A stretch of DNA of 64,000 bases, taken from NCBI GenBank assembly GCA_033442325.1, contig JAWQFM010000003.1, forward strand, positions 1,651,944 through 1,715,943, given 5' to 3'. Positions within the stretch are counted from its first letter, which is position 1. Each line of letters begins with the position of its first letter. The notes beneath the pieces were generated by a model, which saw nothing but the letters and a program-made list of their open reading frames with translations, ran no database searches and was not told the DNA's origin. A program made the translations under genes and the position numbers. Source of the stretch: Salpingoeca rosetta. Its lineage: Eukaryota; Protista; Choanoflagellata. Shown one piece after another: positions 6,011 through 11,463 of the stretch.

Positions 6011-9000
6011 CGACGCTGCCGGCATAATGCGTTGATATCTTTGTCGTCTTTGGTTCTGTGTGCGTTGACTCTTGGCCCACCCGTCTTCTCTGCCCACGTT
6101 GCTCGCATGCTCGCTCACTCACTCACATGCTCACTAACCCCCCTCTCACTCACACGCACACGCACACACTCTCTGTATCCACTCGTTTTGTTCTTGTGTT
6201 GCAGACAATGTGACCGTGAAGCTGACGGAGATTCTGTTGCGCACTGCCCACTTCAGTCAAGACCCTGTTGTTGCCTCCTTCCTCTGCGCCACGCCATCAC
6301 CCGAGCAGCCATCGCCGCTCCTCTCCCTCGTGCGCAAGCTCTCCTGGCGCCTTCCCCCGCTTGTTGAGCCGTTTGTTGCCGAGATCTGCGCCGTTGTTCG
6401 GTCTGTTGCCGCGCACATCAGCATTGCAGATGACCTGCAGCGCCGGCGCACGATGCAGACATCGCCGCTGGAGAAGCACGAGCTCGTTAGGGAGACACTG
6501 GAGAGGCACCGCGGCCACACGGACGCAGAGGTGGTAGAGGCTGTGCTGATGATCCGTGAACACATGCAGGAGGACGTTTTGCCTGCGCTCATCGACCTGC
6601 TGCACGGCGTTGTTGTTCGTGGGGACAAGTGGACCACAGACTCCGTCAACTTCATCAACATCTGCCCGGACCAGGTGCAGGGGGAGTTCCCAGCGCACCT
6701 GGCGCGCGGGTACTTCAACCGCAAGGACAAGCAAGTCAACGGCCGCGCCGTCTTCTACAACCGCATAGTCAAGCGCACACTGTACTGGAGTGCTGCTCGC
6801 TCGCGCTGGGAAGTGGCCAGTACGGTTGCCGAGGACACGGATAAGTTTGTGGAGGCGTACGCCAAAGAGGACTGCATGTCCCCGGACGTGGCCACCACGT
6901 GGTATTTCTACCGCCGTAGAAACGCTTACACGCGAGGGTTCGAGCCCATGCAACGCGTCTGCATGGAGCAGGCCCCATCTGGTGCGTTTGTGCGCGTTCG
7001 TGTGTGTGTGTGTGTGCATGTGTGTGCGTGTGCGTGTGCGTGCGTGTGCGTGCATATGCGTGTGTTGTGCTAGGTCTGTGTTCTGCATTTTGCGACTTCA
7101 GTCCCGCCACAAATTTCTCACTTCATCCTGTGTTTTGTCCATTTGTTTGGCAAACATTCAACACCACATGGACTTTCTCTTGAAACACATGGACGGTCTC
7201 TTGAAACACGTGGACGCCCCTTTTGTTGTACTTGACAGGGCTGCGGTTCCAATATCTGGATGCGCTTGTGCGGACAATTGCGGAGCTGATCAAGGCGGCG
7301 GGTCTGCGCATGGCAACTGCAAGCCCCATGATGCAGCAGATGCGAGATGTTCTGGACCACGCCATCGCCCGCGTCAGCATCGGTCACCCCGTCAACTTTG
7401 ACAGCCCGTCCCTGCTCCACCTCTGCAGCCTCGTGTGCGACATTCCCGCCAACAATAATGATGGCTTCTTCGATCTCATCACAGAGTGCGCGCGTGTCAA
7501 CTACTTTCACGGCTTCGTGGCCGGGTTTGACCTCACAGCCACCATGTTCCTGTCCACGCTCAATGCGGCGGATGGCGTCACGCCGCAAGCACCACCACCA
7601 GCACCAGCACCGCCACAGCAAGCCGCCTCTGGAATATCTGCCGTCACTGAGGATACCAGCGCGGGATCTGAGCAGCACCAAGAGCAAGGCCCAAGCGCGG
7701 AGGCAACAGAGCAGTGGGCGTTTGTGCAATTCTTCGACCGCATCTTCAAGGGCCGCGACTTGCTGTTCAATGCGATTGTTCGGCTTCGAAGCGGCGAGCG
7801 CCTTTCTCGTGCCATTGGCAGCGCCCCTAAGCTAACAGACGAGCGTGGAGAGCTTGAAGTGCTGATGGATGGCCTTGCGCGCCTCGACCACTGCATCGGC
7901 AAGTGCGTCACCTACCGCATGTTTTCTCTCTTCCTGGATTCCTTTGGTAAGCTGGAGGACACGCTGCTGCAGGCCGCAGATGATGCCCGCACCGCAGCGC
8001 AGGCCGAGGCGCGCAGGGCCTTGGAGCAGCGTGCTGTCATGCATGGCGTGGGCCGCTTGTCTGCCCGGGAGGCTGCCGTGGACGCAACAGCCGCTGCTGC
8101 TGACGACTCATCTTCAGCCCTGCGCGTCATCTCGGCATCGACTGTGGGCATGGACATTGCCAATGCAAACCTCGAATCCCTCCTGCGCGTGCTTGCCGCA
8201 ACCAAGAGGAACGCAGCGTGGTCGCACACGCTCAGTGCCCGCGTTCCACAGCTGGCCAAGCCACTGGAGAGCGTGGTGGTGATGGCGCGGGGGCTGCCGT
8301 ACGCCCTGCCGCAATTCATCCTGCTGCTGGAAGAGGCGGTGACAGACAGCTGGACCACAGCCACGACACCAACCAGCCTGCATCGCAACCCTGTCTCTGG
8401 CCACCTCATTGAGCTGCTTGCCAACATGACCGAGCACGCGGTTGCTCGCGGTGGGCTGACTCACCGACATCACCAAAGCCACCACGACCGCCGCCGCCAC
8501 TACGACGCCAACGCCGACGCCACTACGAGTGTCGATGATGATGCTCGCCAGCACGCACTCGACATGCAACTTGTGACCTCCACCATCTTCCACGCCAACC
8601 CGGTGCCTGTGCTGGTGTCGCTCATGTGTGGGCGCCAGCTGCACAACAACGTGTTTCGCACGACGGCCGATCTTGGCACGCAGCTATCCTGGTTCACCAG
8701 CGCCCTGCGTGCCCTGGGCAACCTGGCCAAGTCGAAGAAGGAGCACCGCCTGCGCATCGTGCATGAAGGCCTTATCCCTGTCCTGCTCCGCTTCCTCATT
8801 GTCGGCAACCTCAAGCTGAGGCACAACGCCACGCGCTGCCTCAACGAGACACTCAAGTTCACGCCGGAGAGCGTGGACGAGTTCCTGCAGCAAAGTGGAC
8901 ATCTCACGGTACTGCGCCTGGCCCAGGAGGCCAGGAACGAAGACATTGCCAGCACAGACACGCAGCTTCTTGGGTCACTGCTGAGCGTGCTGGCTGCCAT

Positions 9001-11376
9001 TGCATCCGTGCCTGCCGGCGCCAACGCGCTGCTTGATGAGCCCGAGTTTGTGGCGCTGTTGCGGGAAGCAGTTGATGCGCAGACACGAGCGGTGGAGGGC
9101 ATGGCGGTGTTTGATGCGTCCCTAGTGAGCCTGCTCATGTGCGACCAGGTGAACCTGCTGTTTGTGGTGCTGCGGCAGCTGCAGGTTCCAACCAGCATGA
9201 ACACGGTGCGAGCAAACCTCGCCAACCTCGGTGACGCCCTCATGCAGAAAGGGTTCCGCAGTAACATGGAGCGCGTGGAACGGTGGCTGCACCACGACCA
9301 GGGCAGCGACAGCGGTGGTGGTGTTGGTGTGACGGGCATTAGCGCTGTGCCCGGCGATGGTGCTGCTGATGAAGAGGATGAGGAGGATGATAACCTCGTT
9401 GACGGCACACCGATGCAGCCGGAACACGAGAGCGACTGTGACACGCTGCTCACGGGGCACCTGACCACACGCCAAGGGCAGCAGCTGTCACGGCGTGAGA
9501 CTTACGCGTACCAGCTCGGCACACTCGCTGATGTGTGCACGGAGAAAGGTGCTGGTGCAGTCAGGAGCGCCACGGCACAAGGCCCATCCAGCGCACAGGA
9601 GCAAGCACCGCCACCAAAGGTGTTCTTGTCCTTCAGCTGGGCGCACCAGGTTACCCAGGAGCAGATCTGCGAAGCTCTTAAGCAAGCTGGCTTTGATGTC
9701 CTCCTCGACGCCAACTACAACCGCTCCCAGGTGTGTGTGTGTTGTGTGGATGTGTGTGTGATGTGTGTGTGTGTTGTGTGGATGCGTGTGTGTGTGTCTA
9801 TTTTGCATGTGAGTTGCGTGTGAACCAACATTTGGTGCGGGTTGGTTTGTATTTTCTTCAATGCGTCCAAGGATGGACTTGAAGTCTTACTTGCCACAAC
9901 ATGCGGGTCTTGCTCCGAGTCAACTCTGACTGATTCATGCTGTTGTATGGTTCTGTCTCATACACCCACACCCTGTGGTAGGCGCGGACGTTGAGCAGCG
10001 TTGCTACGGCCGTTGCAGATGCAGATGTGACGGTGGTTGATTACTCCCCGGATCACGACAAGTCCTACAGGTGCAACGCAGAGCTCATGTTCATCCACAA
10101 GTACCGCAAGCCCTTGTTCTTTGTGAAGACAGCTCGGGCATCGGTGAGTCGACCTTTGTGCCGGGCTTCTCGTGCTACCATATCTGCGAGTCTGACTGTA
10201 TGCATGTGTGTGTGTGCAGTCGTGTGAATGTGTGTGAATATGCTTGTGTAGTTGTGTGTTTGCGTGTGTGTGTGTGTGTTTGTGTGTGTGTGTTTGTGTT
10301 TGCATGTGCGTGTGACATTGAAACTCGATGTGATCAATGTGGTTCTCACACGCGTGCTCAACCCACTGCCTGATTCGCTTGCGTGCTGCGATGTACCCTC
10401 GCTTCCGCTCCTTGTCTGCCCTGTGTGCAATTGCAGCCACCAAAGGAGAGCCCGCTGGAGGTGCTGTATTCACAGCACATGCAGTTTGATATGACGCGGT
10501 CCGTACAGAGCGATGACGTGGCACTGCAGCTGTGCATGGCTCTCAAGGCCCACTTCTACAACCCAGCAACAACAGCCATAACAACTGGAATGTGCACGTC
10601 CGACCCCGTTCTGATCAAGTTCGTGTCGGATGCTGGTGTCGCAGCCAGCGAGGTGCTGCCTGTTTTGCAGCGCCGCGGCGTGTGGACCTTTGACCAGCTT
10701 CTGTCACTAACGCGGCACGATGTGGATTCGCTGCCATTGCCTGTGCCAGACAGGGCTGCGCTGCAGGCCAAGATGGATCTTTTTGAGTATGAGGTGCTGG
10801 TGACCTTTTTGCGGCGCGTTGGCGCTGCCTCACTGCATGCGCTGAGTGCCCTGCGCAGCCACGGCGTGCTGTCGTTTGCGATGCTGGCAGCGCTTGGGCG
10901 TGACGAGTTGATGCATATGGGCTTGCACATGGGTGACATTGTGCAAATTCTCAACAACAAGGGGAGCTTTGACGCGGACGCTGCACTGGCTCAAGTGAGG
11001 ACACACCGTGGTGGTGGTGGCGGGTCTTGGTCGCAGCCCAGCGGGCTTGAATCGCAGCCCAGCTGGGCGTTCCCACCGCTTTACCAGCAGCAGGCCCCAA
11101 CACAACAGCAGCAGCAGCAGCAGCAGCCGCAGCAGCAGCAGGGGGAGGCGTCGGGGAGTGGGCAGGGCGGCTTGTCAAGCCCGCTGTCGGATGATGTGCT
11201 TCGTGCGCTGCAACGGAAGGAGCAGGAACTTATGCAGGCGCAGCAGGAGATGCAACGACAACAGCAAGAGCAAATGCAGCAAATGCAGCAAATGCAAAGG
11301 CAGCAAGAAGGGCGTGAGCGGCAATTGCGACAACAACACCAGCAGGGGCAACAAGTGGAGCGTGAGACGCAACAGC

Positions 11377-11463
<87 letters not shown>

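Follow-up and report, generated by a model that had tools for sequence, protein, structure and literature searches.

The genome of the choanoflagellate Salpingoeca rosetta harbors, within the 64,000-nucleotide stretch analyzed here (contig JAWQFM010000003.1, positions 1,651,944 to 1,715,943 of the forward strand; referred to below as the window), a gene that encodes a TIR domain of the TIR_2 type split by two phase-0 introns. The gene is real, expressed, and spliced as proposed from the sequence, and its TIR carries a glutamate that aligns with the helix-C catalytic position of TIR domains that cleave nicotinamide adenine dinucleotide (NAD+). An enzymatic reading is plausible on the basis of this alignment. 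The best explanation, to which we assign a probability of roughly 0.45, is that the protein would act as an assembly-activated NAD+ hydrolase (NADase), likelier to yield ADP-ribose (ADPR) than a cyclic isomer, and would function in the manner of SARM1 or the bacterial TIR NADases, though not as an ortholog of SARM1.

The exons and introns that make up the TIR-coding part of the gene, in window coordinates, are given below.

7238-9730, + strand: large exon with the conserved N-terminal part, the armadillo repeats, the acidic linker, and, at its 3' end, TIR piece 1
9617-9730, + strand: TIR piece 1 (exon A), comprising strand A (box 1, V-F-L-S-F-S-W), helix A, strand B (D-V-L-L-D), and the start of the BB loop
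9731-9981, + strand: intron 1, 251 nt, GT..AG, phase 0, TG-rich, lying within the BB loop
9982-10143, + strand: TIR piece 2 (exon B), comprising helix B, strand C (V-T-V-V-D-Y-S-P), helix C (S-Y-R-C-N-A-E-L), and strand D (L-F-F-V-K-T)
10144-10436, + strand: intron 2, 293 nt, GT..AG, phase 0, TG-rich, directly after strand D
10437-10571, + strand: TIR piece 3 (exon C), inferred, with helix D, strand E around M-Q-F-D-M-T, and helix E

Direct reading of the + strand placed the end of exon A at CAG/GT (9730/9731), exon B at 9982-10143 with AG before and GT after it, and the start of exon C at 10437, directly after an AG, all within GC-rich eukaryotic DNA whose introns contain TG microsatellites. 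The stretch is contained in 20 public runs, four of which were mapped onto 6900-12400. Assembled transcript contigs from two independent studies, one of 2024 (X4, depth 93) and one of 2011 (X7, depth 17.6), follow the same path through 6900-6980, 7238-9728, 9980-10142, and 10436-11093, and these blocks are adjacent in the coordinates of the records. The joints correspond to the two proposed introns, with offsets of 1 to 2 letters that fit either side of the joint, and the 293-base joint has GT..AG ends in both contigs. Moreover, the same contigs cover 7238-9728 without a gap and splice out one further upstream intron, between 6980 and 7238. The preliminary description of this DNA had derived its exon pieces and peptides by reading alone; the translations proved identical, and both of its phase-0 GT..AG introns were skipped in the contigs of the two studies. 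Because transcript contigs reach ∼2.36 kb upstream of 6900 and the open frame continues to 12146, the length of the protein is estimated at ∼2,200 residues. Raw RNA reads (X22 and X23) covered the exons too sparsely to strengthen the contig evidence, and a low-depth contig (8.65) inside intron 1 suggests some unspliced RNA or DNA carry-over.

Several irregularities were observed among the reads and contigs along the gene. Many raw reads of two 2026 runs end with TG-rich loose ends at 10197-10218 and 12206-12223, and the same reads link these two sites through inserted repeat letters. This pattern looks like cross-mapping of a TG/CG-rich repeat common to intron 2 and the 3' flank, and a real joint between the two sites was set aside, since TG-rich repeats occur at both. 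In addition, the RNA reads and one contig set carry a C>G difference at 7595, a few reads contain a joint that goes back from 11343 to 7588, and one contig skips from 7615 to 9368; these oddities at 7588-7615 could stem from transcripts of a paralog, from a polymorphism, or from chimeric assembly.

To identify the domain, all searches of the TIR were made exon by exon, with a cut-off of 28 bits for Pfam TIR_2 (PF13676). Exon A matched positions 1-31 of TIR_2 (25.6 bits, E 1.8e-5) and exon B matched positions 43-86 (14.2 bits, E 0.064). Collinear in the profile, these matches are singly below the cut-off and have a rough sum of ∼40 bits. A local profile of 12 intronless TIRs from the same genome was likewise matched, exon A falling on its positions 13-48 and exon B on 50-105. 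Single-exon phmmer searches against PDB gave no TIR match, so that profiles were needed, and a profile of exon A from the studied gene and three paralogs matched the bacterial TIR 3h16 in PDB. These paralogs, which lie elsewhere in the S. rosetta genome, are as follows.

C11:110824-113973, paralog that also has the long armadillo exon
C30:708890-712042, paralog that has the long armadillo exon and, additionally, the two exons upstream of it
C33:204984-208115, paralog consisting of the TIR part only

Both intron positions, in the BB loop and after strand D, are identical in the three paralogs. Their exon B is 38 to 46% identical to the studied exon over its whole length (43 to 47% in the search that found the paralogs), and 18 of the 54 residues of exon B are invariant among the four genes, including S-x-x-C-x-x-E-L and R-K-P-x-F-F-x-K-T. 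Against TIR_2, the paralogs scored 24 to 30 bits with exon A (positions 2-34) and 25 to 31 bits with exon B (positions 38-89), the best exons (30 and 31 bits) exceeding the 28-bit cut-off. The C33 copy apparently begins at a Met that directly precedes the TIR and may be a short TIR protein without the armadillo part.

For exon C, the first 50 residues gave no match to Pfam or to the local TIR profile. A weak, correctly placed hhalign match was obtained at the strand-E position of another TIR of the genome (E 0.024, probability 2%), the paralogs share eight invariant columns in this piece, and the AlphaFold2 (AF2) model shows two helices with low confidence over this piece. The share of exon C in the TIR fold is what we infer from the fact that exon B ends directly after strand D. 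The earlier claim of a TIR spread over three exons was sound in that three exons are joined in the transcript contigs and that exons A and B match TIR_2, while for exon C it goes no further than this placement.

The codons that bear on catalysis all lie in helix C, as follows.

10069-10071, + strand: AGG, an Arg codon where WxxxE would have its Trp, four residues before the Glu (sequence reading)
10072-10074, + strand: TGC, Cys three residues before the Glu, invariant and aligned to the Cys of W-C-L-N-E-L in SNC1
10081-10083, + strand: GAG, candidate catalytic Glu, in frame, codon 34 of exon B, in S-Y-R-C-N-A-E-L

The Ser, Cys, Glu, and Leu of S-x-x-C-x-x-E-L are invariant in the four paralogs. 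Among eight TIR segments of the genome (the four paralogs and four more, including a locus on C14 in which a SAM domain precedes the TIR), the Cys and the Glu are the only invariant columns, and the Glu also falls on the conserved Glu of the local TIR profile. When searched against PDB, the four-paralog profile of exon B matched SNC1 (E 0.01), TLR1, the plant TIR 7xoz, TLR6, ROQ1, RUN1, and RPV1, and a profile of the eight segments matched the CRISPR-associated NADase Cat1 (E 1.2e-4), 7xoz, TLR2, TLR1, and others, almost all matches of both profiles being TIR domains. In the printed alignments, which were those of SNC1, 7xoz, TLR1, and Cat1, the Cys and the Glu fall on the C and the E of W-C-x-x-E-L. 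The entry 7xoz is a plant TIR deposited under the name of an ADP-ribosyl cyclase. In SNC1 these two residues are C90 and the catalytic E93, and the E93A substitution abolishes function (PMC9706416). The proposal that the codon at 10081-10083 specifies a catalytic-position glutamate was thus upheld at the level of sequence by its alignment with the motif Glu of four known TIRs and by its invariance in the paralogs, and this residue would be placed to serve in NAD+ cleavage.

Two further parts of the protein, one on each side of the TIR, bear on how such an activity might be controlled.

∼8171-9289, + strand: armadillo repeats, with weak Pfam matches to ARM_ARMC5, HEAT_EZ, and Arm
10602-10958, + strand: two SAM-like domains, downstream of the TIR

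The product is a large, expressed, cytosolic, multidomain protein. A conserved N-terminal part is followed in it by the armadillo repeats, the acidic linker, the TIR, the pair of SAM-like domains, and a tail that is rich in poly-Gln and acidic residues. An AF2 model of 8171-9289 had a predicted local distance difference test (pLDDT) score of 59, and the top 50 Foldseek matches to it were all designed armadillo proteins, SARM1 not being among them. For the region encoded by exon C, the AF2 model reached a pLDDT of 75 to 81 over residues 57-176, and Foldseek matched the SAM-like part to the tandem SAMs of Caskin and SARM1 and to single SAM domains, with template modeling (TM) scores by target of 0.7 to 0.8. 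The Pfam matches of this region were SAM_EPH (17.9 bits, cut-off 27, E 0.0025) and SAM_2 (14.2 bits, cut-off 20.5, E 0.052). Between the armadillo repeats and the TIR, the linker contains a motif at 9416-9560, P-E-H-E-S-D-x-D ... E-T-Y-x-Y-Q-L-x-x-L-A, which the paralogs on C11 and C30 have conserved. The C-terminal tail (11250-12146) contains a run of ∼40 Gln encoded by a CAG repeat within a larger Gln-rich stretch, followed by a long Glu/Asp-rich stretch, and the transcript assemblies break within it.

Taken with these surroundings, the preferred explanation would work as follows. The SAM domains probably bring the protein together, with the armadillo region exerting control; the assembled TIR would then cleave NAD+ using the Glu at 10081-10083. 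The likelier product would be linear ADP-ribose, with depletion of NAD+, rather than a cyclic ADPR isomer, because the Trp of WxxxE is replaced by Arg. Tryptophan at this position has been connected with cyclization: AbTir W204A loses most of this activity, and an aromatic residue occupies the position in 12 of 12 TIRs with cyclic products (bioRxiv 10.1101/2022.05.07.491051). The Arg in the studied TIR, set beside this 12-of-12 record, weighs against a cyclic ADPR isomer as its signal.

A number of features and reports weigh against a simple NADase. First, the position of the WxxxE Trp is occupied by Arg in the studied copy, by Asn in two of the paralogs, and by Ser in the third, in a profile column whose counterpart in SNC1, TLR1, 7xoz, and Cat1 is the W of W-C-x-x-E-L; an aromatic residue four positions before the Glu, a trait of NAD+-cleaving TIRs, is therefore absent from the studied TIR and from all three paralogs. 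Mutation of this residue abolishes NADase activity in L6 (W131A) and ROQ1 (W82A) and removes part of it in SARM1 (W638A) and AbTir (bioRxiv 10.1101/2022.05.07.491051). Second, the BB loop, N-Y-N-R-S-Q/A-R-T (the slash marking intron 1), contains neither Gly nor Pro, the paralogs having one Gly, and the AbTir BB-loop mutants G174A and S176A are nearly dead (bioRxiv 10.1101/2022.05.07.491051). Third, the Glu is present in TLR2, IL-1R9, and IL-1R10, which have no activity, and in a 2026 screen in Escherichia coli only 4 of 29 protist TIRs bearing the Glu made a cyclic ADPR isomer, compared with 12 of 61 from animals (bioRxiv 10.64898/2026.04.20.719644). The Glu is necessary but not sufficient for activity. 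Moreover, the Pfam scores of the SAM-like region are below their cut-offs, and every Foldseek E-value of its model is at least 0.07. Finally, none of the four paralogs has diverged as far as the studied copy, whose exon B scores 14 bits against TIR_2 compared with 25 to 31 bits in the others. The objection from the missing Trp is softened by another S. rosetta TIR, which makes cyclic ADPR (cADPR) in E. coli (bioRxiv 10.64898/2026.04.20.719644). By our own count, this active TIR, with D-N-V-L-L-E-W around the listed catalytic position, has Asn four residues before the Glu, so the Trp rule is not absolute.

Two other substitutions had been flagged in the preliminary description as possible signs of an unusual specificity, namely, F for Y in box 1 and L for W in V-W-x-D. 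Both are real differences, in that the studied copy has lost these residues whereas the three paralogs keep Y and W; the change from Trp to Arg at WxxxE had been missed. To our knowledge, neither of the two flagged positions is a catalytic determinant, and the Trp-to-Arg replacement matters more than either of them.

The most serious rival, which we nevertheless regard as rather unlikely, is a TIR without enzymatic activity, serving as a homotypic or heterotypic interaction module in a scaffold or adaptor, in which the Glu would be structural as in TLR1, TLR2, and TLR6. The exon B profiles match these three receptors as well as the plant enzymes, the inactive Glu-bearing receptors named above are precedents, the loss of the WxxxE Trp in all four paralogs and the atypical BB loop would be accommodated, and the at least 48 TIR_2 matches in the genome represent possible partners. 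The restriction of invariance to the Cys and the Glu in eight diverged segments, however, fits a catalytic constraint better than a surface contact; furthermore, the S. rosetta TIR that lacks an aromatic residue four before its Glu is active all the same, and the TIR of TLR4 was reported active in 2026, so that the class of pure scaffolds is shrinking.

It seems improbable that the Cys and the Glu serve an enzyme with another substrate or another chemistry, whether as synthesis of 2',3'-cyclic AMP or GMP on nucleic acids or as decapping of NAD-RNA. The invariant Cys three residues before the Glu would suit the former, given that its plant counterpart contributes to the proposed 2',3'-cyclic nucleotide monophosphate synthetase activity and not to the NADase (PMC9706416), and NAD-RNA decapping by TIR domains has been reported (PMC10937652). 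How much the synthetase activity matters biologically is contested even for plant TIRs, though, and no evidence is specific to this reading. We hold it to be a comparably long shot that the four ARM-TIR-SAM genes represent a SARM1-like executioner of choanoflagellates, metabolic or immune, that was assembled independently and has an undescribed TIR chemistry, whose substrate or product would lie outside the known set of ADPR and cyclic ADPR; this idea arises because the Trp has been swapped for Arg, Asn, or Ser while C-x-x-E has been kept. Equally improbable is a copy drifting after duplication, with a functionally dead TIR in a gene that is still transcribed: its TIR_2 scores are the lowest of the four paralogs, and it has lost the box-1 Y, the V-W-x-D W, and the BB-loop Gly that the other three possess, but the frame is intact over all exons, the splice sites are canonical, the spliced transcript occurs in several studies, and the 18 invariant residues of exon B, with both of its conserved motifs, still remain.

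To place the gene among its relatives, the whole genome was searched (55.4 Mb in 68 contigs), and at least 48 six-frame TIR_2 matches were found. One of them, C14:846631-847545, is a single open frame in which a SAM domain (SAM_2, 41.7 bits) precedes the TIR (TIR_2, 74 bits; motif S-D-Y-C-R-K-E). This SARM1-like order suggests that the SARM1 homolog reported in the choanoflagellate survey of 2018 may correspond to this locus. The opposite order, a TIR_2 match followed by a SAM match within ∼1 kb on the same strand, was found at seven loci, five solid and two weak.

C26:20811-21969, TIR-then-SAM locus
C30:18474-19582, TIR-then-SAM locus
C14:1676079-1677147, TIR-then-SAM locus
C23:1193250-1194303, TIR-then-SAM locus
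C1:989455-990874, TIR-then-SAM locus
C4:2360964-2361970, TIR-then-SAM locus
C4:2149043-2149993, TIR-then-SAM locus

We take the five solid and two weak loci to belong to the Roco-TIR-SAM family. TIR before SAM is thus common in this genome and not peculiar to the studied gene.

Among known systems, SARM1 offers a close parallel in parts, since in both proteins armadillo repeats and a pair of SAM-like domains accompany a TIR that has the helix-C Glu. The likeness probably extends, by analogy, to the logic of activation, with SAM-driven assembly switching on a TIR enzyme that a repeat domain restrains. The order of the domains differs, being ARM-SAM-SAM-TIR in SARM1 and ARM-TIR-SAM-SAM here (8171-9289, 9617-10571, and 10602-10958), and the S. 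rosetta protein has ∼1,000 extra N-terminal residues and the poly-Gln/acidic tail. SARM1 carries W638 four residues before E642, whereas Arg stands at that position here. Moreover, the SARM1 TIR was absent from the PDB matches of the exon profiles at E ≤ 10, although plant TIRs, TLRs, and Cat1 were present. The notion of a rearranged SARM1 was rejected on account of this absence, of the generic armadillo model, and of the C14 locus, in which SAM precedes TIR. The protein is not a SARM1 ortholog, failing on both domain order and TIR similarity, and at most would work like SARM1 by analogy.

The plant TIRs (SNC1, RUN1, RPV1, ROQ1, and 7xoz) provided the best local matches for strand C and helix C, with the Ser, Cys, Glu, and Leu kept; their E-values are weak (0.01 to 1.6) because the query was only a 54-residue exon. 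The Trp of the plant motif (S-x-W-C-x-x-E-L) is Arg here, and the NB-ARC or LRR context of plant TIRs is missing from this protein. Cat1, the best PDB match of the eight-sequence profile, also keeps the Trp (S-D-W-C-W-D-E-L), while box 1 of the bacterial TIR_2 protein 3h16, I-F-I-S-H-A-W, resembles F-L-S-x-S-W here. With Cat1 and the bacterial proteins the studied TIR shares the Pfam family TIR_2, but it belongs to a eukaryotic, intron-split gene and stands in another domain context. Within the same genome, the Roco-TIR-SAM proteins have a TIR followed by a SAM domain and a conserved Glu, and one sister TIR makes cADPR; they represent another TIR subfamily (D-N-V-L-L-E-W, intronless) with LRR-Roc-COR upstream in place of armadillo repeats.

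Relatives beyond this genome were sought with the ∼830-residue exon, in collections from which the records of the genome itself are excluded. A word search gave no match, its length window excluding proteins of ∼2,200 residues. An exhaustive representative search with the same exon found, outside this genome, only three metagenomic fragments with 35 to 55% identity, none of which reaches the TIR. These fragments, which presumably come from uncultured choanoflagellates, match the armadillo and N-terminal exons, one of them beginning at a position that matches window 6210, and they lie on contigs of 1.3 to 1.8 kb (an ENA ERZ840537 contig of 1778 nt and a Tara Oceans metagenome scaffold of 1289 nt). 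A scan of metagenomes with the exon B profile gave 598 pattern matches, none of which was confirmed.

Choanoflagellate SARM1 homologs with the conserved Glu, as well as Arm domains associated with TIR, have been described previously (Richter et al. 2018, PMC6040629). Against this background, the gene is a fairly ordinary one, with a known kind of TIR and three sister genes, and it enlarges by one the set of Glu-bearing TIRs that occur alongside armadillo and SAM domains. What is new is small, namely, that the intron positions are confirmed and common to all four paralogs and that, of all columns in eight TIR segments of the genome, only the Cys and the Glu of helix C never vary. The family-wide absence of the WxxxE Trp makes these four genes a natural test case for the role of that residue.

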